Source of the DNA: Klebsormidium nitens
Lineage: Eukaryota > Plantae > Klebsormidiophyceae
Length of the DNA: 55,082 bases
Direction: 5' to 3'
Assembly: GCA_000708835.1 (NCBI GenBank)
Contig: DF237159.1
Location: 2,466-57,547 of the forward strand
Shown: positions 9,389 through 54,818 of the stretch, piece by piece
How the letters are laid out: every line of letters begins with the position of its first letter
Position numbering within the stretch: position 1 is the stretch's first letter
Translations under genes and position numbers: made by a program
Notes under the pieces: model-generated
The model's input: only the letters and a program-made list of their open reading frames with translations
Told to the model about the DNA's origin: nothing
The model's database searches: none

Positions 9389-12300
9389 ATGGCGGCTGCC
9401 CTGGTGAAGTCACAGTTCTACTGGCCCGGGCACTTGGTTCGACAGCCCTCAAACAACCACCAGCACACTGGAAGGATCCAAGCTAGTCTGCACAATGCAG
9501 GTCCCGTACCCACTCCATCTGCTCAGAGAGCACCACAGAAGGCCGCTGCCACTGAGAAGCCGCTACAAAGCCAGGAGAGAAAGGACAATGCAGCCATGCA
9601 AACGAAGGACCTCAAGCTAGTAACACCTTCAGAAGCAAGGGATGAGGCATCCAAGAAGCGAGCACCTCTCATTAGTCGGGAAAGAGTGAACCACCAGGGA
9701 AGGAGGAGTCTGCTTACCAAAGGCCTGATGGCGGCAGCATTGTGCCCTCTCTGTTCAGACTTGCAACACGCATCAGCTGCAGAGTGGGGCTATGGCGGGC
9801 CTGCGGGGCCGCTGAGATGGGGTGGCTTTTGTATACTAGGGAGACAGCAGTCGCCGATCGACATGCCTGTGAAAGGCACTTCATACAGGCCTGACACATT
9901 CGGCAAGCTGCAGTTCGACTACCATGCCGCTGACGTCAACATTCTAAACACGGGACACGGCACAATGCAGGTAAGCAAGACCTGCATTTCTGTCGTCAGC
10001 TTCAGATTACATTCCCTGGTGTTTTGTTGCTTACGAAGGCACTCAATGGGTCACAATGACCTCAATGGATATAGTGTCAAGAGGTGGCCAGGAGAGTTAG
10101 CAACCTGCCAGAAAGAAGAAGCATGCAAGCGACTGCACCTTCCCTCCAGGTTGACTGCAGCGTTACCAAATGCAGGAATCTTCAGTGTAGTTTTCCGGAC
10201 TCTCAGCTTGCTGTCGTGTTTGGCTTCCCCTGTTTGTTGAATCGCTGCTTTCAAAAAGGAGACGGAAATTGACGTGCAATGTTATTCTCACCCTGGAAGC
10301 TCACCAGGAGTTTCGATCGCCTCTCAGCACATGCCTCCTAAGTCTTACCTGAATTCTCTCAAGATGATCCGAAGCGAAGAACTACCTGGCTAATGTGCGC
10401 CACCGTTCGGCCATGTGCACTTCCAACCTGCGCGCTCGTATGCTTAGGGATCCACCATGATGCGGTCACTGAACCTCGGATGACATCACATCAGTGGCGT
10501 AGCAGTCTCATCACGATGCGCTCAGTGACGTTCTTTCCTCCCCGTCCAGGTCAACTTTCCGGCCGGGAGCAGCACATTGAGAGTGGGAAAAAGGACGCTG
10601 GACCTCCTCCAGTTCCACTTCCACAGCCCCAGCGAGCACGCTGTTGACGGAGAGCGGTTTGATATGGAGGCGCACATGGTGCACAGTGAGCTGTCTGTGA
10701 CCTATCATACACTATCCATCTTACCACCTGTTCATGAGAGCAGGCCTGAGTTTGCAGCAAACGGGCATTTTACTCTGGAGGTGTTAAGGAGCTCTTGCGC
10801 CTGCTGGTCAGATGCAGGACTCCTTGTCTTCTCCCAATTCATATCAGATGAAGCACATCAACAGGCTTCACATGGAAGAATTGTCTCAGCAAACAGGTTG
10901 TGTGGTGGTTGAACACAGGGTCTGTCTTTGCAATCATTGTTGTGCGTACGTCGCTGCTATGGCTGACTCAGCAGTCCGCTTTGTGCAGAGGATCGTGAAA
11001 CCGGGACCCTAGCTGTTGTTGGGTGAGTCCTGTCCTCCCATCTGATTTGGTAAAACAGCCTCTGTTGTGAGTGAGCAGGTGCCGGCAGCCATCTTCTGTC
11101 CAATCACTTTTAATAGAGGCAGGGCTTCTCTTGACCTTTCGCTCATGCATCGCTGCTTATATGCGGCATTTCTTTGAGCTTGCCCGTCAACTGCGGATCT
11201 TCTTCAGAATCTCCATAAACGTCGTTCGCTTTTTCAAACACCAAGATATACTTTCAATAAAGGAAACATATTCAATGTCATGACATTCTTGGGTTATGCT
11301 ACAGGACGCTCCTCCAGGCCGTTCCGGACGTGGAGGCCCTCTTCAACCCGGCCCTTGAAGCAGCACTTCAACTTGCTCCCCGCGAGCACGGAGCTATGAA
11401 GTAAGCTTTGCAAAATCTGCTCTTGTTTGGGGAGGCACCTCAATCACCTGCAGACCGCATTGACATGTGCATGGCTTTCATTGGACACCCTTTTAGGCTG
11501 TTTTGACCCTCGGCTGTTCGTAGGTTCCATGTAGTAGAAGTAACTCCTGTGCTTTCTGACGACTGACAGTGCGTGCTTCCTTTCTTTTCCATTCCCCAAT
11601 TGGGGTCAGGGAGCATCCATCTTGTGAAGTGACAAATATACCTTTGATTTGCATAAACCTTGTAGAGTTGTAGTCAGTTTACTGCAAAGTCTGGCAGTGC
11701 AAGCAGCAGTTGATGAAAAGGTGCTCTTCTTCTGCTCAGTAAATGTACATGATAGCTTCCGAGCCTTCAAGATGATTGTACGAATCCTGGGCGTGCAGTT
11801 ACACAATCTCAAACAGATGTCCTTTGCTTTAAAGCCTTTGGAAAGCTGAATGCTCAAAATCCCGTTGATTGCAGGCCTGCGGCAGTCTGCGCCCCCACTT
11901 GCATCAACGTGAAAGTCTCTGCTGAAGACCTCCTCCCAGTTGTCAGCGACGTAAGTGGCTCTATCCAAGAGTAATTATTTATGTCAGCTGAGATCGTTGT
12001 TACTGACGTCAGAACTCAAGCACCTGCTTTCAGGGTGGAAAGAAGTTCGTTGTGCCTTGCTGTTGCAATTCCCTGCTGTTGACAAAGCCTTGTCCTGTCA
12101 ACCCCCCCTGTCATGTTATGCCGTCTCATGATGAATAGATGCAGAGCAACAATACACAACATCGTCTCAAAAGAAGGGACTCAGGGCAGGGTAAACATGT
12201 GCCCCTTGTCTTTATGGCACCCGTGCGACCTGGCTAATGATCAAACAGCGTTCGTTCAGCAATTCCTTGCTAACATCATCATCAGGCTAGAAGGTACACT

Positions 12301-13617
12301 TCGCCTTGTGAGTTCGATTGTTCAGGGGGGCTGGTTTTTGTGCATCGTGATCGTACATATATTCTGACTAAATACTTTCTTCCTGCAGGCGGATAGCCGA
12401 TCGTACTTCCACTACGCGGGTTCGCTGACTACGCCGCCTTGCAGCGAGGGAGTTGATTGGTTCATGATGGGTGAGCGAGACGTGTATTTATAATTCGTCC
12501 ATTTGAGTGCGAGCTTATTTTGGTCAATCGGTGTCTGAAGGGGGTGCGTCTCATTGTTGAGGGCCTGGATCACTGGAAAAAAAAACGGCAACGTTAGCAT
12601 CTTTTTCTGGTCTGCTTGATGCGCTTGGGGCAGCTGGCGTCAGTTCTGCCTGCCTAAATGAAGATGCTCTGAATCGGACGATCTAGATTAGGCCCTTGAA
12701 GCCTCATCTGAGCGCCTTACTAGAGCGAGCTTTTATGTCTTAGCAGTGGAGTCGGTTTGATGAGGACAGCTTTGCACTTTCCGGACATGCCCTTTCAAAG
12801 ACTCCGAAACACTCTTACGCGCTTGCTCGAGACTCCGACGCTACCGGTTGTACCTTGCTGCTTGCAACCAGCTTCGCTGCTCGACTGCGGCTCAACCATT
12901 GGTGGAGTCATGTCTTATTGCTTGACGGGTTTTTGATCTCAGCAGCTGGCACATCGTCAGCACCACAGAATTCGGAGTTCCACCCGGGTTTGCTTTCGGA
13001 TGCTTGCTATAAGAATCTCTCGTTTGGTTCTTTATGGGACCCATACTGAAGGCAGTTCATGACAGCACATCCTAGCTGAATCTGAGTGATTGAGAGTGAC
13101 TAACTCGATTTCGGATCCGTTTTCTGCTGTGCAGGGAACACCGTTCGCATCCCGTACACGCAGCTTGTCAGCTTCCTGCAATATGTCGGCGACCAGAGGA
13201 CGCTGGCCTTCAACACTGTGAGCTTATCCGGACTCAAAAATTCTGTACGGCAAAAGTACCTTGTGAATGAGTCCTGTCGATGTTTAATAACGATCCTGGC
13301 TGGCATCTGAACCTGAATACTCGGTGGAATCTGCCCCAGAACCATGGCTCGGCTCTGACTTGCCGACAGATTCAGTGTTTTGTTTGTCTCAAGGTCATTG
13401 CACTGCTAGAAAGAAGGGGGTCTTGTCATGGGTCTTTGCGTTCTGACTCCGTCTGACGTCCATCGGAATCTGCCTGAACCCATCATGCAGCATTTACTAG
13501 CAAACGAAGGGAGACACTAAGTAAGCGTACAACGAAAAAAGCCTGACGCAGAGCGTTTTACTGCAGCGTCCGTTGCAACCAATCAGGGATCGGGAGATCA
13601 CGAGGGGCCCAGCATGA
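9389..13617 (+). CDS. CAH3: Alpha carbonic anhydrase, CAH3-type, predicted thylakoid lumen (379 aa)
   Basis: Exons 9389-9970, 10550-10685, 10989-11022, 11305-11400, 11875-11950, 12389-12470, 13135-13217, 13567-13617 (1140 nt, in frame). Bipartite signal with twin-Arg GRRSLL..CPLC..ASA|AEWGY, QSPID, NTGHGTMQVNFPAG, LLQFHFHSPSEH, MEAHMVH (three Zn His), YAGSLTTPPCSEGVDWF, NTRPLQ. These segments closely match my recollection of Chlamydomonas CAH3; orthology needs a tree. Confidence 0.92.
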
Positions 13618-16694: not shown

Positions 16695-19600
16695 TCAGTT
16701 TGTCACCTGGACGTTCGTCCGGCGCGCGGCAGCCCCGTCCGCAACCCCGTTCTGAGACGCCCCGTTGAGCTGCGCCTGCTTCTTCCCGCCGATCGCGCGC
16801 TTGTTCAGATGCTCACCCTGAAGCCGGGTCAGCTCCCGGACGTTCTTCTCGGCGGTGTTGCAAATCGCGTGGAGGGGCAGGATCGAGAACGGCTCTTCAA
16901 TCAGCACCCCGACCTGCGGCGACGTATGTTGGATCAGTCTTCATGGCAGCTTTGATAGCAATTCTGAAGATCCCGACATAAGCGGAACAGCTCTGCAATC
17001 AGCACCCTGAGCTATGGCGCTGATCAGTCTTCGTGCAAGTTTTGAGAAGCGGTCTTTCAGTCCCGAAGGTGAGCGGCAAATGTCCGATCAATCAGTCCGT
17101 TCAAAGAGGACGGGTCTCCGACCAGAACCCCGGCCTGCGGCGCTGTATGTTGATATTGGTCTTTGAGAAGGGTTTGGACAGCGGTCGTAAAATTCCGAAC
17201 ACAAGCAGTATATGTCGATCAATTGATCCATTATTAAATGAGAGCGTAAATATCGATCAATCAATCCAATAGGAAAAGACACAACATAGGCAGCCAACGT
17301 CGATCAATCAGTCCATTCGAAGAATTTCTGGTCTTCACGCCTAAGTGAGTAAAGCTTGGGCCATCAGTCTAGTTTCAAGAGCATTCTGCGCCTCCTACAC
17401 AAGAGCAGCTATGAAAACAACTTGGCTTGTTGTCAACAGCGTTCTGATCGATCAGTCCGTTCTCAGATAAACGCCTTGCAATCAATCATTCTGTGTGAAA
17501 GCCGACCTATTTCGTCCAGTAGGAGCGTGTGTCAAAAACCAGATTATGATTTGCACAGAGATGAACGGGCACATGGCTCATACAAGCCGCAAGACAGAGA
17601 TACGATCAATAAGGAAGGTGAAGCAGAATGCGACAAGTAAACCTAGGCTAAATGGGGCTCCAGGAGGTTACCCCACTACCTTGTGGGATCCGGCCAAATC
17701 ATGTGTACAAGGGAGTCTGCAAGCTAGGCTGCTTTGACCAGATGTACTTCAATCTGCCAATTGTGATTTGTGGCTCTGATCTTTCTTCCGTCGTCCAATG
17801 TTGTGCAACAATATTCAGGTCGAGAGGGGAAAAGCAGGGTGTTCCCAAGTATTAGAAAGAAGGCGCTAACCCTACCAGTCAATCAATGCTCCCTTTGTCA
17901 AAAAGGTCGAACAAGAGAAGAGAACAGCAATATGACGAATGGTGAATCCCGACCTTAGAACACCCTGAAACCCTGAACACCTCAAACCCTGAACCCTAAT
18001 CACCTTTTCAACGCAGAATTCAATGCAGAAGACTTGGGAGGCCGCCAGGAAGGTAGCCGCAATAACCATCCAAAAAAGGATTGAAAAACCGATGAATGGT
18101 GACAAAAGAGGGCATTCTGGCATGAGAACCCCTAAGCTATGAAACCCTAAAGAGCAGATCCCTACCATCTCAAAACCCTTCAAAAATCACTAGGTGTGGC
18201 ATCGCCTCTTCAATGCAGAAGAGCCCGGCAGCAGACACGAAGGTGGCCAGGACTACCACACTTAAAAAGGGGTTGTTGACACAAAATGAATGGTGGAAAA
18301 AGACGGTGAAAAACACGGCGCTTCGGCGGCGAAACCTTGAAACCCTAAAACTCTGCAATCCCAGAACCCCTCACCTCTTCCAATGCAGAAAAGCGCAGCG
18401 GCGGACAAGAAGGTGGTCAGAAGACCATCTTACAAAAACAATGAATGGTTTGAACAGACTATGAATGGTGCAAACAGAGGGCAATTTGGCGTGGAAACCT
18501 AGAACCCTACAATCTCAAAATCCCTCAGTGGCCTCACCTCTTCAATGCAGAAGAGCGCGGCGGCGGACAGGAAGGTTGCCGGCACAACCATCCAGTGGCA
18601 CGCGTCCCAAAGCGCGAGCGGCAAGAAGAAGTGCCACAGGACTAGGAAACGACTGGTCAGGCGCGTGTAGGAAAGGGGGAGGGGGGTCTTGAAGATACGC
18701 TCGCAGCCTCCAACTTGGTCGTGGAAGTGGGTCAGGTTGTGGTCCTGCAAACCGGCACAGACATCTTTAGGTTTAGCTTAACTGCGCCTGATTGAGGAGG
18801 CTGCTAACCTATAGCCCAAGAAAACAATGCGTGCGTGCATTTGGCGTCTAGAGCAGTGACTGGCCTTTCCTTTTGTATCCCCAAAATTTTATTTTGATCA
18901 GCAAACTCCAAGCTCTATGAATGTACAACAGCAGAACTGACAGCGCAATGTCAGTTCTGGGATGGAAGGGGGGGGCCCTTCTGGAATGGAAGGGGTGGGG
19001 GCCCCAGTAGACTTCAGACATACATCTCAATGCATGTCCAGAACCGGGCTTACAAGCTTCTCTAACTTTTCCTCACTTAGCTTCCTTCACGTTGTTTTTG
19101 AGCTCTGAGGAACACCTAGCTTTGTCGAAATGCATTGGGCCAGTGCATGAGAAAAGAATCCTTCTCAGGCGAACAGCAAAGTAGTCAGAAAGTGCTTGCT
19201 TACAAGGTTAACTCGCTGAAAGTCGGTGAGGTCAGTGTTCTTGGAGATGACTTGGGACATGACTTGCAGGCAGTAGTTCGGCCGGTGCTCCGTCGACGTC
19301 AAGATCTCGATCTCGTCGGAGTTCAGTCCAACGTTCTGCAGTCAAACAGAGTTGTTAACAGCTTACAAGATGAGCATTCACAGACCCACAGAATCTTTGT
19401 TGTTCCAGCAAAGAAGCACAGTCTGAAGTGGGCCCCGGGCGGCTTTTCTTCTATGACGAGATTTTGCATGTGAGAAGAGGGTGAGAGCAGAAACAGCCCT
19501 CTTGAGGCGAGGTGTGACAGAAACGACTTTGTTGACGAGATGTACCTGCCTACCTCAGGTGCTGGAGCTCAAGAAAATGCTCAGCAACGTATGAGCTACA

Positions 19601-21616
19601 AGAAATAAGCTACTTCATGCAAGGCCACATGCGGATCCCAGACCAAGTCTGGACACATCCTTGTGAACCCTAACTTCGATCTTCACTTGACCTGCATTTC
19701 TATCACAACAACCAGGAGCTGACCAGTAAACCCCAAAAAGCTTTCTGTTCCGCTGGTAACCTGCAGTTTCCATGTTACCCGCGCTTTGTCTTCTCGCAGC
19801 ATGCAGTCCTTGAATGTCACTGTCACCTAACCAGTGCTAATCAGGCCAGGTTTACGGTGTAAACCCCTCCTGCCATACCCGCATGTCGCCCACAATGCGA
19901 TCCTCTCCCAGTTTTTCAAGGCTGAGCAAGCAAGCACTAATCACTTTGGTTATCAGCACAACTTTTTCGTGTCAAAAGTAACCCCAGTTTCCAACTTACC
20001 CGCATGTCATCGACAATGTGGTCCTCGCGCAGCAAGTGGTTCTTGAACGCGTACGGGAAGGCCATCAGATAGCGCAGCACTTCCTCCCGCTCCTCGTTGT
20101 CGTCCATGTAGGACAGCGCCTGGCGCGCCAAATCGCGGACGCGATTCAGCGTCGCACCCCACATCTTACGCGCCTGCACCACAATGTGACAAATGAGTTA
20201 ATATTACAACCAATACTCTTAGTCCATTCTTTTCCGTCTCAAACAAATTGATGTTTTTCCCGCAACTCATTTAATATCGCCCACCACATATTGAGCACTG
20301 CACGACGATGATGTCAAAAAGCCCTCTTTGAAAGCGATTGTTCCAGTCACCATGTTGTTTCATTCTAGTTCCTTGTGAAAGCAAGCAATGCGGACTTTTC
20401 GTCGCAGGATAGGTGCAAATAGGGTTTCAGAGGCCATGCCTCTTGCACCGGAGAAGTGCCTGATCTAAAACCAGGGCCTCTGCCATTGCTTTCCTGTGCG
20501 GGCAACGGGCGGCCTTGCTTCAAATGACAAGCAGAGCCCAGCAGACGAATGCAACTAGACGGGAGATTGATGAAGGCAAGCTTCCAGAGCACTTTTGAGA
20601 TTAGCGCGGATGGAACCGTGCTAAACGCAGATGAGCAGATGTTCTTGCTTTGCACTAAAGGAATGTGACTGGGGGCTGTGCAACCGCAAGGACCATGTGC
20701 GCATCTGCGGCGTTTTGCTCAAGTCACAAGACTCCATTTCTTCCAAGGGACCTGGATTCCATGCCTTGCGGCTCTCAGGCAGCAATGTGCACCCACTCAC
20801 AAACGAGTCCAATGTCCTCTTAGAGCTGCTTACTAAGATGGCACAGCGAAAGTCACTCTTCATACTTCAGCTGGATGTCCACTTCTCCACATCACCAAGG
20901 CTTGACCAACATAGGTAGATGTTCCTTCAAGAAAACCCTAGTCAAACCCGGAGCAGCCGGCTCACCTCGTCGAAGCGGGAGTACGACGCATTTGTCCGGA
21001 AGACCAGCAGGAGCGCCAGGGCTGGGGCTGTCAGCTGAAGCGGGAGTGCAGATGCTTTCAGCAGGGGAAGCTCGTGCGGGAGAATATCATGAACAATGGC
21101 CTCATTGTACAGAGCCATCGCAAGGGCGCCACCTGTCAGAGCCAGGACTGGGGGCCCCAAGGCCAAGATAACGCGTGACGAACTGATGCTGAGTATGTGG
21201 CGGTAGTGCCGCGTGCTGCTCCTGTGGCGCAGCCACTCGGGGTGGCCGAAGACAGTGCGCCGGTAGACCATGCTCTCCTCCTTTTTGACATCCGCGCTGA
21301 TGGGGGTGAGGTAGTGCTTCAGGGCGACAGGTGGCGGACTGTTCGACTTTGGCGCGCTCTGGCACCGAACCGAGCGCCGCTGTGGAAGGGAAGGAGTTCT
21401 CGTCTTGCGAGCTGCTTCCTCTTTCGAGTCTGCCAGGTCGAGGGACGCCCTCAGAGATGCATGCCCCCACATTCGCTGCCATTTTTCCTTAGTGGCCAGA
21501 GGGCATCCAACTTGTGCGGGGAGCGGGTTGAATGCAGGAGCCGATCTAGCGGAGGCGGGGCCCCCCCCGGTCCAGAGGGCCTGCGGCCGCATGGCAACGT
21601 GAGCGGAAGTCGCCAT
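16695..21616 (-). CDS. VCCN: Thylakoid bestrophin-like anion channel (UPF0187; VCCN1/BEST and Chlamydomonas BST family), 460 aa, with predicted plastid transit peptide
   Basis: Exons 21616-20966, 20173-20000, 19335-19204, 18744-18538, 16913-16695 (1383 nt, in frame). Motifs RRTVF..WLRHRS..RH, QLTAPALALLLVFRTNASYSRFDEARKMWG, HRPNYCL, GGCERIFKTPLPLSYTRLTSRFL, LFCIEEVGVLIEEPF. Confidence 0.95.
16935..17470 (-). repeat. Degenerate repeats of the bestrophin last-exon acceptor region
   Basis: ggtctccgaccagaaccccggcctgcggcgctgtatgttgat (~17113) versus real ggctcttcaatcagcaccccgacctgcggcgacgtatgttggat (~16891); the motif gatcaatcagtcc recurs through ~17460. Confidence 0.65.
17960..18470 (-). repeat. 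Three degenerate copies of the bestrophin exon-4 3' end plus donor, with aaaccct-rich spacers
   Basis: ttcaatgcagaaga..gaaggt copies at ~18018, ~18205, ~18372 versus real cctcacctcttcaatgcagaagagcgcggcggcggacaggaaggtt (~18533). The ORF track shows AAGLFCIEE and ASQVFCIEF echoes of AAALFCIEE. Confidence 0.88.
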
Positions 21617-23145: not shown

Positions 23146-26100
23146 ATGGCTGCCGCAACACATGCCGCCGCCGGGCGGGTGATGAGCTTGGAGTCAACTG
23201 TTCTGGGTGCTGCGCAGCCTGTTCACACTGAGTTTGCTGGGTTGCCTCTAAGTTCCGACCGCGGCCGCGGCAACTTGTTGAGTACCAGACGCAGCTCGGT
23301 CTGGGTCCCCTTGAACGGCCAGAGGGTGCGCCCCGTTTGCGCCCTTAACGGGAGCAAGAATGTGTCGGCCCCTGCCCAGGTCTCAGGTGCGCCTTAGTCT
23401 CTCATATACTTCTGCTGCGCCTCACATTGCACATTTCCTGTTCATATCTGAGTCTGCTGATGCATTTTGAGCGCCCTTTTCAAGAGTTTCGATAACAGCC
23501 TTGCAGCACACTTGGAAGGACTGGTGCATTGTGTCAATGTCGATGCTTCTTCTTGTGAGTGGTGGTTCACATTGTGGATTCTGAGTCTTGCGATCTCAGT
23601 GGTACCTTTTGTGGGTTTCGGGTTTCGTGTTCAGAGCAACAAAGTGGCAATGGCATCAAATGATAGAGAGGATGGTATGTCGTGGGAAGCTGCTCAAGAG
23701 GAGGTCTTGCGCTATTTGTGAGGGCAATGGTAAACCAATGCAAATGAGGCACTGTGGAACCCTAATGCAACATACAATGGAGCGTGCATTTCGCAACAAC
23801 ACCTGCATTTGAGCAAGTGTAGAGATGGGGACTCTTGATTTACCAAGCTTTCCGGGAATACCATCCTGTCCAATTACCAAGCTTTCCGGGAATACCATCC
23901 GTCCAGAAGTTCAAAGAGGAAACACAACAGGAAATTCTTGAAGAGGAGGCAATGAAGAAGCAGGAACTACATTGTGTAGACCCACATTGTGCTAAGAGTT
24001 GGTGAGCTAAAGTTAGTAGACGATATTTGGAAAGACCTGCTTTGATACACTCTTCTCCATGCTTTGTCCCAACTATCCAAAGTCTTTCTCAAGCATCCTC
24101 ATTTGCTCCACACAGAAAACTGAACAAAACATTCCTTTTCCCACTTTAAACACAAAACCCTACTCAAGCCACCTCCCTTTCTTAGAAATCCTTCACCCTC
24201 TTTTCTCACTGCCTTGGCACACATTGTCTCCTCAACTGACCCACTTTCTCCCTCCCGCAGTTGAGGCGACACCTGTCCCCGCCCAGCGCCCCCAGACCGT
24301 CGCCTCCGTCCAGGCCGCCCCCCCTCTGGCCTACGTCAACAGCAGCCAGCAATACCTCCCAGCAGTGCTCGTCGGCGCAGGCCTTGCCGCGGCCTTCTAC
24401 GCGCTTTTCGGCAACAAGCAGCAGGCCCCCGCTCCTGCTCTCGCCGGCAATGCCCCCGCAGCGCCTGCGCCTCCGGCACCCGCTCCCCAGCCCATTGTCA
24501 TCAAGATTGAGCAGCCCCAGACGACGTCAGGTGGCGGCAGCTCAGTGGCTTCCAAGGCAGCTCCGACGGACGCCACGCGCAAGGCGCGGGATACGATGGC
24601 CAAGTACTTCCCGGTGGTGCAGAAGGACACCGACTTCCTCGGAAAAGTGTCGGAGGCGCTCGAGGACCTTGGTTTCAACAGGTGAGGGACTTATTCATCT
24701 GTTTGTGCATTTGGTCTCTCTTTTGTTTGTGGAGTTCGTTCATGTTGATATCGTGTACTTTGTTCATGTTGATTTCGTGTACTTTGTTCATTTCGACATC
24801 TGATGTTGGGACTGACCCTTGTGTTTGAGCTGCTTGTAGTCGCCCTGTGAATGACGAGTCCAGAGTAGGGTTTTGGAAATGTCCCTTATGGCTGACAACT
24901 GAGGAAATGAGGAAAGAATCTTGATAGAGATGGGTACTCCAAAAGTTGTGTCTCAGTTCATTGCTCAACTTCAGATAAAGGTCCCAATGAACAGGCTCCA
25001 GTCAGGACTGTGCTTACCCTCCTTTCTTTTGTTTGTTGACATTGGGAACCAGAATAAGTCTCGTCAATGGGTCTTTCAACGAGAGCTTGATATCTTCTCT
25101 ACACTACTAATGCTGTCTAGGCGCTGATGAGTTTGCATATAGAATGGATAAGTGGCTATGGGTGTTGATGCTGTTCCTTTTATTTCAACCACAACCACTC
25201 CTTGCCACGCTCAATCTTGAGCTGCATTGTACCACTTGTGTGTTTTGCTTCAAACTCGTTGTTCAGGTCACACTTTATCTTGAGCTGCATTGCACCACTT
25301 TGCCTTCAAGTGAAGCAAGCTCGTTGTTCAGGTCACACTGTATCTTGAGCTGCATTGCACCACTTTCCATTCAAGTGAAGCCAAACTCGTTGTTCAGGTC
25401 ACACTTTATCTTGAGCTGCATTGCACCACTTTGCATTCAAGTTATGATCTCACTTTCCAGACTCTTTGTTCAGGCTGAACTTGAGGGTAAAGACATTGTG
25501 CAGACTTGTACAAGCAGCTGCTTAACATTACACAGCTGAGATGTGGTTCTTGCAGAGAGCGCCATTCAGTATCTCATGACCTGTGTCTCATCTCGTGTTT
25601 TTGCAGGAACAACTGCATTGCCCTGGTCGATGCTTGCCGTGACGAGATCACCCGCGGCCTGGTTCAGAACATTGATGAGGTGAGTCCAGAATCAGTCTGA
25701 ATCAGTCTGGGGGGAAAGCAGTTGCCCACACAGACCCTTTTGTTCAGGGAAATTGGTGCTCAAATGTGAGCCCTATTCTTCAAGGATATATGCTCCAGTT
25801 CAGTCAGCTGATGCTGATATTGGCTCTGCCTTGATTGTTGACCCTGAATGCAACCCTGCTTCGATGTTTTGAGGGGTATTCTGATGCTTTTGTCGCGTTC
25901 AGCTCAGAGCTTCTGCACAGGAACAGTCATTGTTTGCTCTTGATCGTCAGTGCACTTGCCTCTTTAAAGGCACAGTCAGTGAGAAGGGATTGAGAAGAGG
26001 GTTGTGCAGACCCTTTTGCAGCTTCAAGTCCAGAACAGATTGATGTTCCAGCAATGCACCAGTTGAAGTCCCTTGAGAATCACAGTGACTCCCATCCCTC

Positions 26101-28326
26101 CATACGTGGAGCTTATCTTCGCTCATGTCATGCAGATTTACGGCGAGTCGTTCAACATTTCCGGCCTAGGAGGGTATGTCAACTGCGGCAAGACCGGCCT
26201 AGGGGCTGGCATGGCCCACTCCCCCACCCTCCCTGACCGCGACCAGGACGGCAAGATCCGCGAGAAATGTGAGCTTTCCTGGTTTTTGACTTGTTCTTCA
26301 AAGTGCATCAGAAGTCCCTGCCGCAACAATTGCACAGTCCTTTAAGATGCAGGAAGGTTTGTGACCTATGATTCCCATACAGAGTAACTGGTATCTGGCC
26401 AGTGCTGACTTGAGAACTTCAGACTCGAGAGAAGTCTTCACTGGAAGTAGAAGCCATAGAAGCTCAAACAACAATGAATCTCAGGTCCAACCAGATCTAC
26501 AGAATTGCAACCTCTTACCACTTCAAAAGACATTTTGAGAGACGCCCTATCACTTGCATTACCCAGTCGCCTATAGAAACCCAGGGGTTGCTTCATAAAC
26601 CAGCAAGTTCATGCAGAACTTTCATTGAAACTCTTTTTGTTTACTTAGAGTTCCTGGTAAACCCTCTGACGCAATGCTTTCAACCCATGTGCAGATGTCT
26701 TCTTCGCTTTCCCCCACGTGGCTGTTAGCGCCGACGGCGCCGAGGGCATGGTTCAGCGCATTGGGCGCGAGAAGATCTCCAGCGCATGCGGCGCGTTGAT
26801 CGCGATCCAGGGAGAGGCGAAAGGCTGGTCCGGTGATGCACAGTACCCGGACGACATCGAGTACACCATTCTGAGGAACAAGGTGCTCCACAAGGTAAGC
26901 CGTCGATTCGGTGTGACTGTGTTGCTTGGCATCGCATTGAACTTACTCTCCACCGCTCGCTTTGAAAGCATCCCGCCGCTTTCATCCACTCCCTTGACCA
27001 ATCATGTGGAACTCTCCGCCATTCAGTGGAGTTCTTTTCTGCATAAGCAAACTCATTACCACAGGCTTTCAGTGGAGCCGAATGACTTTCAAATAATCTT
27101 CTCCTGGGGTTGCTGCTCTAACAGGGTGCGCAGCATTTACAGTCCATTTCATTCAGCCTTGCTCAACTGCGTCTTTGGTACGGATTCTCCAACGTCTGAC
27201 GCCAGCTATCGCCGTGTGCAGCAATCGTGCCTATGCAACATGGCGACCCAGACGCCGTCGCTTATGGATGTCACCAAGACCGCCCTTGACGTAAGCAATC
27301 CAGCATACTCTGAAGACGAAACTCTAAATTGACTCTTGATCCAGCATACTCTGAAGACGAAACTCTAAATTGACTCGGATCAACAATCCCAAAAGGCTCT
27401 TCAGATACTTGTGCGGGACTGTTGCTGCCAGGCTTCGAACGTTCAGTCGGATTTTTCCGAGGACCGGTAGACGTTTCGACCACACAGTCGGACGTCCTTG
27501 GTCATTCGTTTGTGCATGAAGGATCACTGACGGCTAGTCCTCTGTCTGTGTTGGTTTGAAACACCTTGACGAGCGACATGTAGTCCCACATTAATATACC
27601 TTACAAGCGAACATCGAGAGAAAGCTGTCCGCTTGCTGAGCATATCCGGTTCACTGTGTGCAGGTGATCACAGAGGACCTGAACGACTTGCTTTCCAAGG
27701 TCGTCGATCCTGCAAAGGCAGACTTCGCCGTCGTCACCGGCATTCAGATCCACGCAGGAACATCAGAGGTAAGCAGAGGATCCATCCTCTGACAGTCCAT
27801 TTCTTGCATCCGAGTTTGATTTCCCAGTGGATATCAGATCAGTGTGAGCCAACGCAGATTACATCAAAAGATCCTAGCAACTCGCAGAGTCTACCAGCCT
27901 TTTGACTTCTCACTCCTCCATATTTGGGTCTGTTCTGGAGTACGAAGTTGCTGTGCCTCTTCCGCTTCCGTTCCTTTCCCGTCCTGAGCCCCAAATTTGC
28001 TGTTGCTATTGGCCGCTCTTGTTGGCACAGCGTTTCAGTGGTCTCTCGAGTTTGGAAGGACATTGACCTCCGAAAGGACAGAAAGTCTGTTAGCCTTAAT
28101 GCTACCATAACCTGTCCTAACCTGTGGTTTTTTCCCCCCGGTGCAGGCTCCCGATGATCAGAACCAGTTCGTGGACTACGTTGCCCCGGGCACCATGTAC
28201 GCCGTGGTTAACGGCCAGGGTTACTCGCTTGACTGGCGCTGGGAGAACGGCTCGGTGATCTCCAAGAAGATGCCCGCAGGCACCCCTGACAAAGTGCCGG
28301 CCCTTGAGCTTATTGGTGCGAAGTAG
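23146..28326 (+). CDS. LCIB: LCIB/LCIC-family (limiting-CO2-inducible, beta-CA-fold/theta-type carbonic anhydrase) protein, 484 aa, with plastid transit peptide and extended N-terminus
   Basis: Exons 23146-23379, 23635-23674, 24261-24681, 25607-25679, 26136-26268, 26695-26894, 27222-27290, 27664-27768, 28147-28326 (1455 nt, in frame). Family motifs: NCIALVDACRDE, YGESFNISGLGG..CGKTG..AGMAHSP, YVFFAFPHVAV, SACGAL, ITEDL..VDPAKADFAVVTGIQIH, YVAPGTMYAVVNG. Cys/His/Cys Zn ligands are present. Confidence 0.95.
23840..23900. repeat. Direct duplication (27 bp, period 34) in LCIB intron 2
   Basis: ttaccaagctttccgggaataccatcc occurs twice. Confidence 0.85.
24738..24792. repeat. Short tandem repeat (~24 bp) in LCIB intron 3
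   Basis: gttcatgttgatatcgtgtacttt / gttcatgttgatttcgtgtacttt / gttcat. Confidence 0.75.
25212..25442. repeat. ~62-bp minisatellite x4 in LCIB intron 3
   Basis: Unit atcttgagctgcattgcaccactt...aactcgttgttcaggtcacact repeated; no resemblance to an exon. Confidence 0.88.
27298..27376. repeat. Direct tandem duplication (~42 bp) in LCIB intron 7
   Basis: atccagcatactctgaagacgaaactctaaattgactc occurs twice. Confidence 0.88.
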
Positions 28327-29815: not shown

Positions 29816-32800
29816 TTAACCCGCTTCTTGCAGCTTCCGCTTGCCGGCCCGCACTCTCCGGCAAAACACCTCGAACGACGGACTCAAGTCCACGGACTTG
29901 ACCAGCTGCGCGTAGCTCTTCTCCTGGAACCATTTCGTGAGCAGTTCGTTCGCGTCGGGCAGCGTTTGCAGCAGCTCTCTGAACTTGTTCTTTTGGACCT
30001 TCCGCTTGGCGATTTCGGTGGTTTTGTCGTATTGGGGGCTGTTGTCCGCTTCGGACGCTAGAGCGTCGTTGATGAGGCCCCACGACATCGCGATCATGTC
30101 CACGAGAGCGGACCTGCAGAACGAGTATGGGGAGGATTCTGGTTTTAGGCTCCTTTGGAAAGAACGGGTTTAGCATTGTCGATAAGGCCCTACGAAAAAG
30201 TAATCGTGTCCACAAGAGCGGACCTGCAGAACGAGTATGGAGAGAAAAATGTCTCCAGATTTTGGAAAGGGCCGCGAGGGGGACGTTGATTAGACCCCAG
30301 AAAAAGGCACTTAATGTCCACGAGAGCGGATCTGCGGAACGAGTATGTGGAGGAATCTATCTGAGGACTTGTTTGAAAGGGACACGAGGGCGTTGTTGAT
30401 GAGACCCCAAGACACGACGCTCAAGTTCACAAGAGGAAACCTGGAGATTAAATACGGAAAACAGACCATCTTCAGACTTGTTGGAGAGAGGGATTTTGCA
30501 GAGAGCAGGAAGGAAGGGCAAATCTTGACGTCTGGCCAGTCCAAGAGTGTCGAACGGCAGAACGAGATTGGGGGGAAAAGTTGGATGCCATCATGTCCAA
30601 AAAGAGTGACCTGCGGAACTTGATTAGGCGGAAGAGCGCGTTGAAGATAAGGGCGTGAGGGACAAGGAAGCGGACGCGAAGAATGAGAAGAAGGGAAGCG
30701 AACATTCAATCAAACATGAAGGTGACGTCAGTTGTACGGAGATAAGAGCTGGCGGGCAGACGGAGCGAGAGAGCATCCAAATAAAGTGGGAGTGCAAATA
30801 AAGCAAAGTTGCACCTTGTCCAGGTATAACCTAGAAAACGGAGAGCGTAAGGAGAGACAACAGCCGAGAGACACTAGGGCAGGGCAAGACCAAAGGTAAG
30901 TCCAAAGAGAAGTAGATACACAATCCTTATCCTTTCAGCAACTATGACAGAGGATTATGCTGACTGCATGACCGCGTGATCTTTGCGCTGACTGCATGAC
31001 CGCGTGATCTTTGCACGTGCCAGTTGAAACAACCCGTCCTTCGAATACATCCAAAACACCAAAGGGTGAGAACAAGTTTGCAAATCTAGAAGACCCTAAT
31101 CAAGGTCCGACGGGTACCAACTGAGCTTTTCTTCACATTCCGGGCTGTTAAAACCCGTCCCATGATGTGTTTCGCTTACTGGTGCTCATTTTGTACCTCT
31201 GAATATTTCCAAGAACGACGCCCTTCGAGTGGACACCTGAGCTGTCTGTCACAAGTTCAAACTCCACGAACGAGCCAAATTCCCTCAACAGGGCTGGAAT
31301 GCAAGGGTAAAGAGGGGGACGCAAACTGCCGAAATACGTCAAACCCGTGCTTGCGTTATGACAACTACATCGCAATCTCGATTCAGGACGACCGTAATGC
31401 CACCGGAACAAGCAGAAACGGGGCGGTCCGCAGCCAAAAAATGCTGACCCGGGCTAACTGCGAAGACAGAAAGGTCCGGCACAAGACAAGCCTCATCGAG
31501 AATGGGTGAAAGGAGGGGACAAATAGTGGAAACACAATGTCCTTCAAGAGGGCTTCGTGGTGGCGTGCACGATGCAGCGACCAATCACTCATAATGTTCG
31601 ACTCGAAATCGAAGTCGTTGGTCGCTGCTTCGACTTTTATGCTGACGGATGCTCGGCGGCCGAAAGGCTCAGCGTGCGCATACACGGGCGCCTTTGTGAC
31701 GTCATGCGGATGCAACCGCTGACGCCCACTTCAAAGGCTGGGTCGAAAGATTTCGCACCTGAGCTGGGGCGGCCGCAGGCCCAGCACGACAATTCTTGCA
31801 CACGTTGACCTGTACTTGCGCAACGTCAGACACAAAGTCCGGTTCCGTTTGCGAAATGGCGGTAACGGAAAAGGCAGCGGAACAGGCGGAAAATGGGCGG
31901 CTCGCATGCCAAAAAATGCGCACCTGAGCTGGGGCGGCCGCAGGCCGAGCGTGGACATGCTGGCGCACGCGATGGCGCCCTTCTCAGGGCCGACCAAACC
32001 CTCCAGCACCTCCAGCGAGAACTGGCCCACCAGCCGCTTGCACTCAGTCTCGGGGATCGCCTGCGGGCAAAATAAACAGTGGGTCAGCTTTCCTGCCTTA
32101 CAAACGAGCCTGTCAGTGCGGGGGAAGGCAATAGAACAAATCTGGTTGGACCGACCTCAAGTTGCAATGTGTCGTGGAAACTCTTGGCATGATCCAAGAA
32201 CGAAAATCAGACATATCTGTCTCACAATCCATCTAAATGTACCTTCCGGCTCGAGACTTGCTTAGCCAGTGACAGCCTCCGTCAGCTGTTCCATAAAGCC
32301 CTTCCCCACCCCGCGCCGAATAGATCCCGTCAAACTTCGACTGAACCTGCTTGAATATCATTCTGACATCCTGAGCTTCAATCCCGGAGTCTGACTTGTG
32401 GCACGCCAGCGATTAGGCTTGGACCATGCAGAAATTCGACCTGGAAAGGACTCGGACAAGACGCCCAGGTGAGCGACAGGCCAGAGACTCTTGCATCCGA
32501 AGACCGCCCGACACGGGGCGAGTGCATCGTTTAATGGGGTTTGCCTGACCTGCTCTTTGTTCACCGCAAAGCTGGATTTTATTCTTCATACCTTCGAAAC
32601 ACTAGGGACCCCCATCCAACGGTGAAACGAAAGTTGTGTTCAGGCCTCGAACGCTTGCGGACGGACTGTCGTCCTCGCGCTGCCAACAGAAAAGTTTGCC
32701 CGTAGACACGTTGTCATCGTCCACCCGTCCTCTCCTTGTTTCTCATGTTACAAGCTCCACCCAGACAGGGGGGTAAGAGTTCGGTTGCCGAAACCGTGAG

Positions 32801-35042
32801 CCTTAACCCACCTTGGACAGCCAGCTGCAGCACTTGGACCACGCAAATAAGTCGTAGTTGTTTGCCTAACCCTGGACTTAACCCACCTTGGGCAGCCAAC
32901 TGCGGCACTTGGACCACGCAAATACGATCTCAGGGATCGCCCCCATCTCCCGGAGCACGCCCATGATCCAGAGCGCTTTCTCCACGTGGTACTTGAGGAA
33001 CGTGCGCCGACGGGCGGAGGGGCCGGAACCCGCAGAGGGCATCGCCAGTCCCGTCGCCACCTGCACGAGTTGAAGATTGTGCACAGCTTCGATGAACAAC
33101 GTTCATTGACTCGATTTGAAACAAACGGGGAATCAGAATGGCGAAATGAGATGAGCTTTGTCAGTGTAAAGTACCAGTGCATCCAGGAGATTATGGATGG
33201 ACCTGTAGAATCGAAGTAGGAATGTACAACACTTCGAGACGGAAGCCAGATGCAAGTATTCGGACAATCTATGCAGAAGTATCACAGCCAGATAGTTCCA
33301 GACAGAACTTGAAGTTGCCTGCGCATCGTCAAACCTTAACGAGGTGATAAGCAAACAGGCTCGATCGTCACCGCAGCTCTGACTCTTTGCGTGGGCAAGG
33401 CAATCATTCCTAAAGCAGATGTATGAGTCCGGTCAGGCTGGCTGAAAAAGTCGGACAGGTAAAATCCGAGCGTCGACCAGTCAACCGTTTCATTCAATCA
33501 AAGTCGGAGGCACAAGCAGTGAGGCCGACAAGGACTGGAAATGGATATCTAGTGCGTTTTCCCATGAGACTCGATCTAGCATACAGGGAGCGCTTTACTA
33601 AGGATTCAGCTGCTTGACTACTGACACTCACCTCAGCCAGAGCTCCGTCTATCTTCGCCGTTACGACGTCGAGGAAGGACGCGACCAGAAGCTCATCGCC
33701 GAGCTCCGAGACAGCGGTGGAGAGGAGCTTGTGGAAGGTGCCTGGGGGGGAAATGCATAGGAAGTTTAGCCCTCTATTATATGAATGCGTAACTTGAGCG
33801 GAAGGTCTCCACTAAGCTTCGACTTTTCTAGACGGTGGGGAAAGCACAACGCAAGTGTGGAGGGCGCTGATTGGTTGAATGCTACAGAGGAGCTCGAAGA
33901 AGGTGCGTGAGGAAGGTGCCTTTTTGAACCAGGGGGAGAATGGGAAAACCAGGGGGAGAAGGGGAAATTTCACACTAAATTCTGGTAAGACTAGGGAAGC
34001 ATTGCTACACGGACCCCTGCCAAAGAGTTTACTTATGAACTCAAATGCCGGTTGTCTCAAGTCTACCAGTTTCCACCAACATGCGGATTCTTCTTTCTCG
34101 TAATTTCAGCAAAGCGGACGATGCCTCCATTGCAGAAGAAAGCTGATCACCGCTACTCTCTGCTTTGGAGAAGCTTCATTAGCACTCACCTCTGAGGTAG
34201 TCCTTGTCCTGCTCCAGCGCCGACAGAAACGCCACCTTGAGCGTCTCTATGCAGTTCGACCCGCTCACAGGCTCCGCCCTCTGAAGCAACTCCCTGGCAG
34301 CCGGAAGCTGCAGCGGTCTGATCGCATCCTGGATCCGAACCAGCTCATCTTCGCTCCACCGGGACGCTTCCAGGAAGGTGCAGCAATACTCGATGAGTGC
34401 ATCGTACTGCAGCTCCGCCGCCACCTCCAAAAGATCAAGCGCGATCGCGACAGTGTCAATCACTGCCTTGTAGTTCTCATAGTACATGAGGTCGAGTGCG
34501 ATGCTGTACGCGTTGTACCGCGCCCTGAGCACCCCCCGGTAGTACTCGCTCTCCTCCTCCTCTTCTTCATTCTCCTCTTCATTTTCGTCCCCGCTGTCCT
34601 CGTCAATCTTCTCGTCATTCTCCCCATCCCCTTCTCCAGTACTCGCGACGTCATCGTTCGCAGGGGCAGCTGAAGTTGAAGCGTCCTGCTTGCTCTCCGC
34701 GGGGGAGCTCACGTCTTTAGAACTAGACGCGGCCACATTCTTCGCGGCCGTGTCAGGAGCTGGGCCCTTGGCTGGAGTCACTGCCTCCCTATCATCTTTG
34801 ACGCCGAGAATGATGAGAGGCATCCCATCGCTGCACTTGCCTTTCGGCCATCGCTTGGAAAGCAGCGCAGCAAAGAAACCCGAGTGCTTAATCAGGACGG
34901 ACTTGTGGAGATGGATGAACTCGTCTTCCTCTCCCACGCCAATCTGGACCCTCACATCGTGGGGGCCCCAATCATCGTGGTCGTCTCTTTCCATTGAGGA
35001 TTGAACGAGGCCGTCCTTACTTTGGAACAGGACAAGCGACAT
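29816..35042 (-). CDS. BTB/POZ-domain protein (plant type) with acidic low-complexity insertion
   Basis: Exons 35042-34190, 33741-33632, possible extra exon near 33322-33171 (uncertain), 33060-32887, 32060-31924, 30113-29816. BTB signature DVRVQIG..FIHLHKSVLIKHSGFFAALLS..W, followed by LLEVAAELQYDALIEYCCTFLEASRWSEDE. Confidence 0.8.
30160..30625 (-). repeat. Three degenerate copies of the BTB last-exon acceptor and start
   Basis: tgtccacaagagcggacctgcagaacgagtatgg (~30207), tgtccacgagagcggatctgcggaacgagtatg (~30315), catcatgtccaaaaagagtgacctgcggaac (~30590) versus real gatcatgtccacgagagcggacctgcagaacgagtatgg (~30092). Confidence 0.88.
30959..31014. repeat. Perfect 28-bp tandem duplication in a BTB intron
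   Basis: gctgactgcatgaccgcgtgatctttgc x2. Confidence 0.9.

Positions 35043-49167: not shown

Positions 49168-54818
<5,651 letters not shown>

Follow-up and report, generated by a model that had tools for sequence, protein, structure and literature searches.

The LCIB homologue of Klebsormidium nitens and other streptophyte algae is probably tied to a chloroplast membrane

Does the LCIB homologue of Klebsormidium nitens work free in the stroma, or is it held at a chloroplast membrane? In Chlamydomonas reinhardtii, LCIB and LCIC form a soluble stromal complex that relocalises around the pyrenoid, and the placement of LCIB depends on LCIC and on the starch sheath. Models of pyrenoid-based CO2 concentration also depend strongly on where LCIB sits. 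A first-pass annotation of the window (the whole stretch of 55,082 nucleotides analysed here, from scaffold DF237159.1) had described a hydrophobic stretch between the transit peptide and the LCIB domain of the K. nitens protein, and had proposed a membrane-tethered LCIB with a distinct architecture.

The gene lies on the + strand and is the annotated KFL_002100040 (GAQ84874.1). An eight-exon GT-AG model was identical to GAQ84874.1 and spanned the same 5181 bases as the annotated gene range, so the protein has 473 aa and not 484 aa as given at first pass. When transcript L001 of a relative was aligned to the window, its exon borders matched exactly. The hydrophobic segment, which had been assigned to exon 3, is encoded by coding exon 2 (24261-24681), and the EFAGL and VCA motifs reported ahead of it were found in exon 1. 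The N-terminus encoded by exon 1 has many Ser, Thr, Arg and Ala and few acidic residues, and it holds HTEFAGLPL and RVRPVCA, the latter being a plausible candidate for the stromal-processing site. Exon 1 ends with a phase-1 donor (CAG/GTGCGC) that joins in frame to 24261, and the same exon 1/exon 2 junction was seen in the proteins of two relatives (P0002 and P0173). The features of the gene are listed in Table 1.

Table 1 Positions in the window of the coding exons and protein segments of KFL_002100040
Feature	Positions	Strand	Remarks
Coding exon 1	23146..23386	+	Start codon, aa 1-80 plus one base, transit-peptide-like N-terminus
Coding exon 2 start, N-terminal tail before helix	24261..24352	+	aa 81-111
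Hydrophobic segment, putative single transmembrane helix	24353..24412	+	aa 112-131
Lys133 and Pro/Ala-rich spacer	24413..24484	+	aa 132-155
Conserved QPIVIKIEQP motif within linker	24485..24514	+	aa 156-165
Variable Gly/Ser-rich linker end	24515..24568	+	aa 166-183
LCIB domain start, end of coding exon 2	24569..24681	+	aa 184-221; 5K5W match from aa 184
Coding exon 3, CRDE motif and zinc ligand Cys231	25607..25679	+	Pfam, invariant columns
Coding exon 4, LCIB domain	26136..26268	+	PF18599 E = 1e-09; transcript alignment 91% nucleotide identity
Coding exon 5, FFAFPH (His297) and SSACGAL (Cys321)	26695..26894	+	PF18599 E = 1.4e-12; PDB matches LCIC, LCIB
Coding exon 6, 23 aa	27222..27290	+	Aligned by transcript L001; required for identity with GAQ84874.1
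Coding exon 7, LCIB domain	27664..27768	+	PF18599, transcript alignment
Coding exon 8 including stop codon	28147..28326	+	Transcript alignment

The family of the protein was determined from its C-terminal domain. PF18599 (LCIB_C_CA) matched exons 4, 5 and 7 with 38.5, 47.9 and 25.2 bits, all above the 25-bit gathering score, and exon 3 with 13.1 bits, below that score; a precomputed PF18599 match was also present on the protein P0172. The Chlamydomonas LCIB structure 5K5W matched aa 184-440 (E = 2.3e-52) and the LCIB/LCIC structure 5B5X matched aa 164-443 (E = 2.5e-47). C231, R232, D233, E234, H297 and C321 were invariant in an alignment of 42 sequences that included the Gonium LCIB-family proteins, and FFAFPH and SACGAL aligned to the LCIB and LCIC structures. 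By these sequence features, KFL_002100040 is a member of the LCIB / theta-type (beta-like) carbonic anhydrase family with an intact domain and its zinc ligands, and is predicted to be active. It shares the catalytic domain, the Cys-His-Cys zinc site and the CRDE motif with Chlamydomonas LCIB/LCIC and presumably carries out the same chloroplast reaction. Among the matches of non-exhaustive word searches, there was one LCIB-type protein for K. nitens and no LCIC-like paralogous partner.

The hydrophobic stretch of about 20 residues was confirmed as YLPAVLVGAGLAAAFYALFG, and the linker behind it was there as described: NKQ followed by QAPAPALAGNAPAAPAPPAPAPQP, still within the open exon that continues into the start of the LCIB domain. 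None of the 20 residues is charged or polar; the segment is rich in Gly and Ala (VGAGLAAA) and has a Tyr close to its C-terminal end. Its best 19-residue Kyte-Doolittle (KD) mean was 1.89 (usual threshold for a membrane helix, 1.6) and its Wimley-White octanol sum was -5.3 kcal/mol, so it passes the classical membrane-helix hydropathy scales, with a position-independent Hessa sum (+2.3 kcal/mol) that is borderline. The Eisenberg mean hydrophobicity was 0.73 and the moment 0.06, which means that the segment is uniformly hydrophobic and not amphipathic. There was no second hydrophobic window along the protein, the next best (KD 1.10) lying within the LCIB domain. The protein thus has the layout of a single-pass N-anchored protein, with one putative helix of 19 residues or more separating the transit peptide from the soluble domain. 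The exon 2 hydrophobic stretch also gave 18.4 bits with the Pfam family DUF6133 (cut-off 27 bits); we rejected this as evidence of homology and attribute it to composition, the family being one of small membrane proteins.

The Ala-rich N-terminal 189 residues were shuffled 20000 times. The KD peak was reached in 957 of the 20000 shuffles (p ~0.05) and a 20-residue run free of polar and charged residues in 81. As a single sequence, the segment therefore differs only modestly from chance, and this is what speaks for the segment being low-complexity sequence rich in Ala, or a mistakenly translated intron. But one exon and one reading frame encode both the segment and the start of the LCIB domain, the gene model agrees with the annotation, and the segment is present in transcript-derived proteins of relatives (a Logan contig and TRINITY assemblies). 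In addition, 37 of 40 distinct complete N-termini of the streptophyte type have it at the equivalent position, and this recurrence puts it beyond chance; we regard a chance or annotation artefact as effectively refuted.

A sequence was counted here if a window between 20 and 130 residues ahead of the LCIB domain reached a KD of 1.5 or more; the equivalent segments lie 30-75 residues from the domain, and the median distance in the 37 sequences was 37 residues. Carriers include K. nitens, K. subtile, Mesotaenium, Netrium, many Closterium paralogues and several further transcripts, and in a tree of the domain the segment-bearing sequences form the streptophyte clade. Their common pattern is P-x-[ILV]-[LV]-G-A-G...A-A-x-Y, then K/R, then a Pro/Ala/Ser-rich linker. 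Between the helices of K. nitens and P0002, 15 of 20 codons differ, nine of them synonymously and six by conservative swaps of hydrophobic or small residues. The layout of helix, spacer and domain is conserved under purifying selection. No equivalent segment was found in the Gonium LCIB-family proteins (no window above KD 0.7) or in Auxenochlorella. It is also missing from Coleochaete scutata and a close relative, so that the segment is dispensable in at least one lineage. What the first-pass annotation had said of a distinct architecture thus holds for the order of helix, spacer and domain, which is unlike that of the soluble Chlamydomonas type; the segment is not peculiar to this gene, being the rule in streptophyte algae.

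The soluble Chlamydomonas type, represented here by Gonium pectorale (P0107, P0215 and P0216), has no segment and stays at KD <=0.7; the K. nitens protein departs from them by a 20-residue hydrophobic helix and a Pro/Ala spacer. Because the layout differs in this way from the soluble type and is kept under purifying selection, a membrane tether is the most likely reading, and the LCIB of streptophyte algae is probably tied to a chloroplast membrane and not free in the stroma as in Chlamydomonas.

In the full-length AlphaFold2 run (42-sequence alignment), aa 186-463 had pLDDT >90, aa 1-175 were not packed onto the LCIB domain, pLDDT was <50 over most of the linker end (aa 166-183), and aa 112-131 had pLDDT <50 with almost no helix. 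The lack of confident structure for aa 1-175 in this run is due to the poor alignment of the N-termini. When a focused fragment alignment (A2) was used, AlphaFold2 gave one 22-residue helix (aa 112-133, pLDDT 62-77). The segment could instead belong to an unusually long targeting sequence cleaved off on import, or be a hydrophobic patch for oligomerisation or for peripheral binding to a membrane or a partner. The low confidence of the full-length run would agree with this, as would the borderline Hessa value, the Gly/Ala-rich small-xxx-small pattern, and Coleochaete, which manages without the segment. However, 20 residues without a polar or charged one and with an almost zero moment fit a buried helix and not a surface helix, and the length of the segment is conserved together with the aromatic and then basic residues at one end. 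Transit peptides, moreover, evolve fast and are not hydrophobic, whereas the hydrophobicity here has been kept over the divergence of Klebsormidium and Zygnematophyceae. On balance we consider a segment that does not span the membrane unlikely.

The tail of aa 81-111 ahead of the helix has a net charge of about 0 and no twin-Arg, its APPLAYVN is conserved in the Klebsormidium clade, and the 15 residues directly N-terminal of the helix carry a net charge of 0 with no Arg or Lys. In K. nitens the bias towards the C-terminal flank is weak, a single Lys giving +1 against 0 on the N side. Of the 37 distinct sequences, 29 had the more positive charge on the C-terminal flank and 3 on the N-terminal flank, with no difference in 5; the mean charges of the C- and N-terminal flanks in streptophyte-type sequences were +0.84 and -0.3, respectively. 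Basic residues directly past the helix are the rule among relatives, distant ones having RKKD, KK or similar there, and across the 37 sequences the positive-inside bias is the one that would put the C-terminal domain in the stroma.

The linker past the helix is uneven in its conservation. QPIVIKIEQP (aa 156-165) had 90% amino acid identity to P0002, against 33-57% in the adjoining parts of the linker (33% for aa 166-183), and apart from changes at its C-terminal end it was kept in the compared sequences of the Klebsormidium clade (four proteins and locus L002). About 10 residues past the helix there is A140-L-A142 and then G, and the same four proteins and locus have A-[LYF]-A-G. An A-x-A is expected by chance in a linker rich in Pro and Ala.

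This A-x-A-G could be a candidate signal-peptidase site, in which case the stretch ahead of it would act as the H-domain of a cleavable Sec/Tat signal to the thylakoid lumen, as proposed for the diatom theta-CA and CAH3. The stretch might also be a signal anchor that carries the C-terminus through the membrane. Either way the LCIB domain would be lumenal, like that of the diatom theta-CA Pt43233. The Ala/Gly-rich composition of the segment resembles that of lumenal signal peptides, the motif is conserved in the Klebsormidium clade, and a lumenal enzyme of the LCIB family is known from Phaeodactylum (Kikutani 2016). Pt43233 of P. tricornutum, together with PtLCIB4, belongs to the same domain family as the K. 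nitens protein (5B5Y, 5B60, E ~1e-16), and it is an example of this family in a sub-compartment enclosed by a membrane. But the K. nitens sequence has no basic or twin-Arg n-region, its N-side net charge is 0 (clade mean -0.3), and the basic residues come past the helix. The A-x-A is absent past the helix in Closterium, Mesotaenium, P0010 and P0006, where the distant relatives have their basic residues instead, and it is expected from the composition of the linker. A spacer of about 50 residues past the supposed cleavage site would have no obvious use, and the LCIB of hornworts is at the envelope. Furthermore, an alpha-CA gene lies about 14 kb upstream of LCIB (start codon to start codon), and its product has a textbook RR-hydrophobic-ASA lumen signal with GRRSLL before the H-domain (Tat-type), so the role of a lumenal CA seems to be already filled. 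Pt43233 is delivered into the lumen, while in K. nitens the flank charges argue for a stromal domain and the Tat signal is on the separate alpha-CA. We therefore judge a lumenal LCIB domain to be quite improbable.

The reading that we favour, with reasonable though not high confidence, is an uncleaved anchor with the enzyme domain on the stromal face of the membrane; its non-cleavage, its topology and the identity of the membrane are all inferred. After removal of a chloroplast transit peptide some 66 residues long, the mature protein would retain aa 112-131 (up to 133) as a single helix across the membrane, with a short neutral or acidic N-terminal tail on the far side (intermembrane space or lumen). 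Lys133 and the catalytic domain would face the stroma, as would the spacer of roughly 50 residues between them, which is first Pro/Ala-rich, continues with the IVIKIE motif and ends Gly/Ser-rich. Such a tether would confine CO2 hydration to a few nanometres from the membrane surface, without the diffusion and relocalisation of Chlamydomonas LCIB/LCIC. The layout has precedents in TIC40 of the inner envelope and STN7/Stt7 of the thylakoids, which are N-out/C-in proteins in which a transit peptide and one N-terminal helix precede a large C-terminal domain in the stroma; near its anchor, TIC40 further has a Ser/Pro-rich sequence. They have no sequence relationship with the K. nitens LCIB, and the cargo here is a carbonic anhydrase.

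Hornworts have no starch sheath and the pyrenoid of K. nitens is starch-sheathed, so the optimal placement of LCIB may differ between them. LCIB::mVenus of Anthoceros agrestis, whose LCIB bears the identifier AagrBONN_evm.model.Sc2ySwM_368.2612.1, overlaps TIC40 at the chloroplast edge and is described as membrane-bound (bioRxiv 10.1101/2024.06.26.600872; also 10.1101/2024.06.24.596764), as such an anchor predicts for a protein of the streptophyte lineage, and hornwort LCIBs have been placed sister to the K. nitens protein (PMC8075897). The analogy with A. agrestis favours the inner envelope as the membrane in K. nitens, and the anchor would explain the envelope localisation of hornwort LCIB, the link being one of phylogenetic bracketing. 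Among the matches of the word searches and cluster look-ups, no LCIB was named as hornwort; several Logan and JGI transcripts of the clade may be of hornwort origin. We found no mention of a membrane segment in LCIB in the literature covered (full-text search, reviews and hornwort papers), and the hornwort preprints covered, including the two cited above, give neither an LCIB transmembrane segment nor a mechanism of membrane binding.

At the inner envelope, CO2 that enters or leaks would be trapped by LCIB in the form of bicarbonate, which would pass through bestrophin channels to a lumenal alpha-CA. LCIB and a bestrophin gene are head-to-head neighbours in the window, with a shared divergent region of 1.5 kb, and the alpha-CA gene adjoins the pair. 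From this head-to-head arrangement it may be, as suggested at first pass, that LCIB sits next to the bestrophin for substrate channelling; in the hornwort, the two proteins are apart, BST in the thylakoids and LCIB at the envelope (bioRxiv 10.1101/2024.06.26.600872). Contig L002 of a relative, which extends just 1.3 kb upstream of LCIB, had no bestrophin match, and around the Closterium LCIB loci neither a bestrophin nor a CA was seen within 10 kb.

A wider picture can be drawn, which we put forward tentatively and with some doubt. In it, the anchored LCIB would be ancestral in streptophytes, the soluble LCIB/LCIC of Chlamydomonas would be derived, the anchor would lie behind the envelope localisation in hornworts, and alpha-CA, bestrophin and LCIB of K. 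nitens, as the three parts of a minimal CCM chassis, would be a co-regulated cluster. Since the layout also occurs in a pedinophyte chlorophyte, the anchored form could even be ancestral to all green plants. A conserved N-terminal anchor would place the arrangement earlier than the emergence of land plants, and it would give a simple sequence-encoded mechanism for the placement of LCIB at the envelope, which the hornwort papers leave unexplained. For crop engineering, the helix and Pro/Ala spacer would be a ready-made part with which a CO2-trapping carbonic anhydrase could be fixed to the chloroplast membrane of choice.

The LCIB gene was rebuilt using splice sites and Pfam matches, which gave eight coding exons with consistent phases and only GT-AG introns, and the product of 473 aa was identical to GAQ84874.1 (KFL_002100040) of Klebsormidium nitens, a homologue that is already known and annotated. 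The GenBank DF237159.1 stretch was identical to window 13146-38326, and the alignment of the 1773-nt transcript contig L001 from a close relative (encoding the LCIB protein P0002) broke exactly at the LCIB exon borders of the window. The region 24261-24681 (+) is a single exon with its AG acceptor at 24259-24260, and it codes in order for the tail of a transit-peptide-like N-terminus, YLPAVLVGAGLAAAFYALFG (24353-24412), NKQQ, a Pro/Ala-rich run and the start of the LCIB domain, the first 38 residues of which are in the same frame and exon as the hydrophobic segment with no stop between. Translation of this exon bore out the segment sequence and coordinates of the first-pass annotation, which had made two small errors in giving the protein 484 aa and in placing the segment in exon 3 rather than coding exon 2. 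The LCIB introns also carried short tandem duplications at four places, without obvious function.

Coordinates of genes, LCIB coding exons and intronic tandem duplications in the window
Feature	Position	Strand	Remark
Receptor-like protein kinase gene	3600-7200	+	
alpha-CA gene	9389-13617	+	
Bestrophin gene	16695-21616	-	
LCIB gene	23146-28326	+	
Coding exon 1	23146-23386	+	splice sites/Pfam
Coding exon 2	24261-24681	+	splice sites/Pfam; holds hydrophobic segment
Coding exon 3	25607-25679	+	splice sites/Pfam
Coding exon 4	26136-26268	+	splice sites/Pfam
Coding exon 5	26695-26894	+	splice sites/Pfam
Coding exon 6	27222-27290	+	splice sites/Pfam
Coding exon 7	27664-27768	+	splice sites/Pfam
Coding exon 8	28147-28326	+	splice sites/Pfam
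Tandem duplication, LCIB intron 1	23840-23905		34 bp x 2
Tandem duplication, LCIB intron 2	24738-24791		24 bp x 2.2
Tandem duplication, LCIB intron 2	25251-25442		65 bp x 2.9
Tandem duplication, LCIB intron 6	27298-27376		41 bp x 1.9
507-aa gene	29816-34994	-	BTB/POZ match 26.2 vs Pfam cut-off 20.5 bits
Class-3 lipase gene	35313 onward	+	annotated 897 aa
DEAD-box helicase-like gene	about 50300-54200	-	motifs judged by eye only

Residues 112-131 were the sole run of at least 15 residues in the protein without D, E, K, R, H, N or Q. Kyte-Doolittle means over 19 residues peaked here at 1.89 (against 1.10 for the runner-up window of the whole protein), the octanol sum on the Wimley-White scale was -5.3 kcal/mol and the simple Hessa sum was borderline at +2.3 kcal/mol, while an Eisenberg mean hydrophobicity of 0.73 with a moment of 0.06 meant that the segment was uniformly hydrophobic and not amphipathic. 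Shuffling reached the hydropathy peak in 957 of 20000 cases and the 20-residue apolar run in 81 of 20000, which is only modestly significant because the N-terminus is Ala-rich. AlphaFold2 on a focused alignment of the anchor region (18 sequences) predicted a single helix at residues 112-133 with pLDDT of 62-77.

Conservation across related proteins is the decisive evidence that the putative anchor exceeds chance. The most conserved LCIB exon served as the query against 1.84 billion representative proteins, and together with word searches and cluster look-ups this gave 275 LCIB-family proteins. In the complete sequences only, the LCIB domain was located and the region upstream was scanned for hydropathy. 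Sequences were taken as streptophyte-type if their domain scored 200 bits or more against that of K. nitens; many Closterium paralogues were among them, although each distinct anchor was counted once. Comparison with other streptophyte LCIBs, as the first-pass annotation had proposed, returned an equivalent segment in 37 of 40 distinct N-termini, as a window with a Kyte-Doolittle mean of at least 1.5 (a crude criterion for a membrane helix) 20-130 residues (median 37) ahead of the domain. The carriers were K. nitens, K. subtile, Mesotaenium endlicherianum, Netrium digitus, dozens of Closterium paralogues and several further transcripts; the three exceptions were a truncated Closterium gene model, Coleochaete scutata and one close relative. 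The segments are recognisably homologous in their common pattern of P-x-[ILV]-[LV]-G-A-G, A-A-x-Y, K/R and a Pro/Ala/Ser-rich linker, and the sequences bearing them formed the streptophyte clade in a domain-only tree. Gonium pectorale (LCIB family of the Chlamydomonas type), Auxenochlorella LCIB1 and Pavlova were among the many in which no comparable segment was found upstream of the domain. Of the 20 codons for the helix, 15 differed between K. nitens and P0002, nine synonymously and six conservatively (Y/F, L/I, V/M, G/T, F/L, L/I), which points to selection for hydrophobic character. An early-branching chlorophyte (Pedinophyceae sp. YPF-701, CAG9467872.1, residues 64-110) had this layout of helix, KK and Pro/Ala linker ahead of the first of its two LCIB-domain matches, and a weaker hydrophobic segment was found in two Mesostigma viride isoforms, which likewise had two domain matches, so the layout may be older than streptophytes or may have arisen convergently, more than once.

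Within the linker, QPIVIKIEQP (24485-24514, aa 156-165) was near-invariant in Klebsormidium-clade LCIBs (90% identity vs 33-57% in adjoining parts) and might serve as a short motif for binding or strand formation. The Coleochaete scutata LCIB, without the hydrophobic helix, had two copies of a 22-residue repeat with PVIVDYRIK, similar to QPIVIKIEQP. A Klebsormidium-like genomic contig (ENA ERZ26165376, 1338-5261) held an LCIB gene in eight tblastn pieces of conserved order, with the same anchor and the A-L-A-G and IVIKIE motifs.

The enzyme domain itself is ordinary and intact as judged from its sequence. PF18599 matched four LCIB exons, three of them above its gathering score and one below, the crystal structures of Chlamydomonas LCIB and LCIC matched the whole protein from residue 184 onward (E = 2.3e-52 and 2.5e-47), and the zinc ligands and CRDE motif (C231, R232, D233, E234, H297, C321) were invariant in a 42-sequence alignment. 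Full-length AlphaFold2 gave pLDDT >90 at about residues 186-463, and pLDDT <50 at residues 1-175, which did not pack onto the domain.

K. nitens had no Lys or Arg in the 15 residues ahead of the helix, the clade mean net charge was -0.3 in the 15 residues before the helix vs +0.84 in the 15 after, and in 29 of 37 cases the C-terminal flank was more positive than the N-terminal one. With basic residues after the helix and not before it, the layout is opposite to that of a Sec/Tat signal, and by the positive-inside rule it fits a predicted N-out/C-in anchor that leaves the enzyme facing the stroma. It is therefore unlikely that the stretch is the H-domain of a thylakoid-lumen signal that would carry LCIB into the lumen: proteins of the Klebsormidium clade do share an A-[LYF]-A-G motif some 10 residues past the helix, as such a signal would have it, but motifs of this type are to be expected where Pro and Ala abound, in distant relatives the helix leads straight into RKKD or KK without AxA, and the spacer of about 50 residues can be understood as a tether, though not as the first part of a lumenal enzyme. 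The upstream alpha-CA is a contrast case in the same window, as its N-terminus (a transit-peptide-like region, GRRSLL, a hydrophobic core and H-A-S-A, then the mature domain) is by its layout a textbook Tat-type lumen signal.

Sequence alone gives no choice between inner envelope and thylakoid for the predicted stromal-face anchor. In a hornwort, a membrane location of LCIB has already been seen: tagged A. agrestis LCIB lined the edge of the chloroplast as a thin layer in two independent studies (10.1101/2024.06.26.600872; 10.1101/2024.06.24.596764), and it overlapped TIC40 and was termed membrane-bound by the authors (10.1101/2024.06.26.600872). A transmembrane segment in LCIB is not mentioned in either preprint, supplements included, or in a further hornwort preprint, and full-text literature searches found no paper describing one. 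An earlier study placed LCIBs of hornworts as sister to that of K. nitens (PMC8075897), and by phylogenetic bracketing the hornwort protein probably has the same anchor, which would explain where it sits and would make the envelope the likelier membrane in K. nitens too.

The alpha-CA, bestrophin and LCIB genes are neighbours on the K. nitens scaffold, in a stretch of no more than 19 kb, and the latter two are head-to-head (divergent), their start codons 1529 bp apart. Gene order is the only basis for the channelling to bestrophin proposed in the first-pass annotation, and this arrangement suggests that the two genes are co-regulated rather than that their products touch. The hornwort has BST in its thylakoids and LCIB at the envelope (10.1101/2024.06.26.600872). 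Closterium LCIB loci had no bestrophin or CA neighbours within 10 kb, and a single literature search returned no paper on Klebsormidium CCM genes, judged by title.

Diatoms and chlorarachniophytes are known to have LCIB-family enzymes in other compartments. We found no published description of streptophyte LCIBs as a group in which a predicted helix, basic residues and a Pro/Ala spacer are conserved at the N-terminus, an arrangement that Chlamydomonas-type LCIBs lack. This conserved putative anchor is easy to test, and would be useful for explaining and engineering the placement of LCIB.
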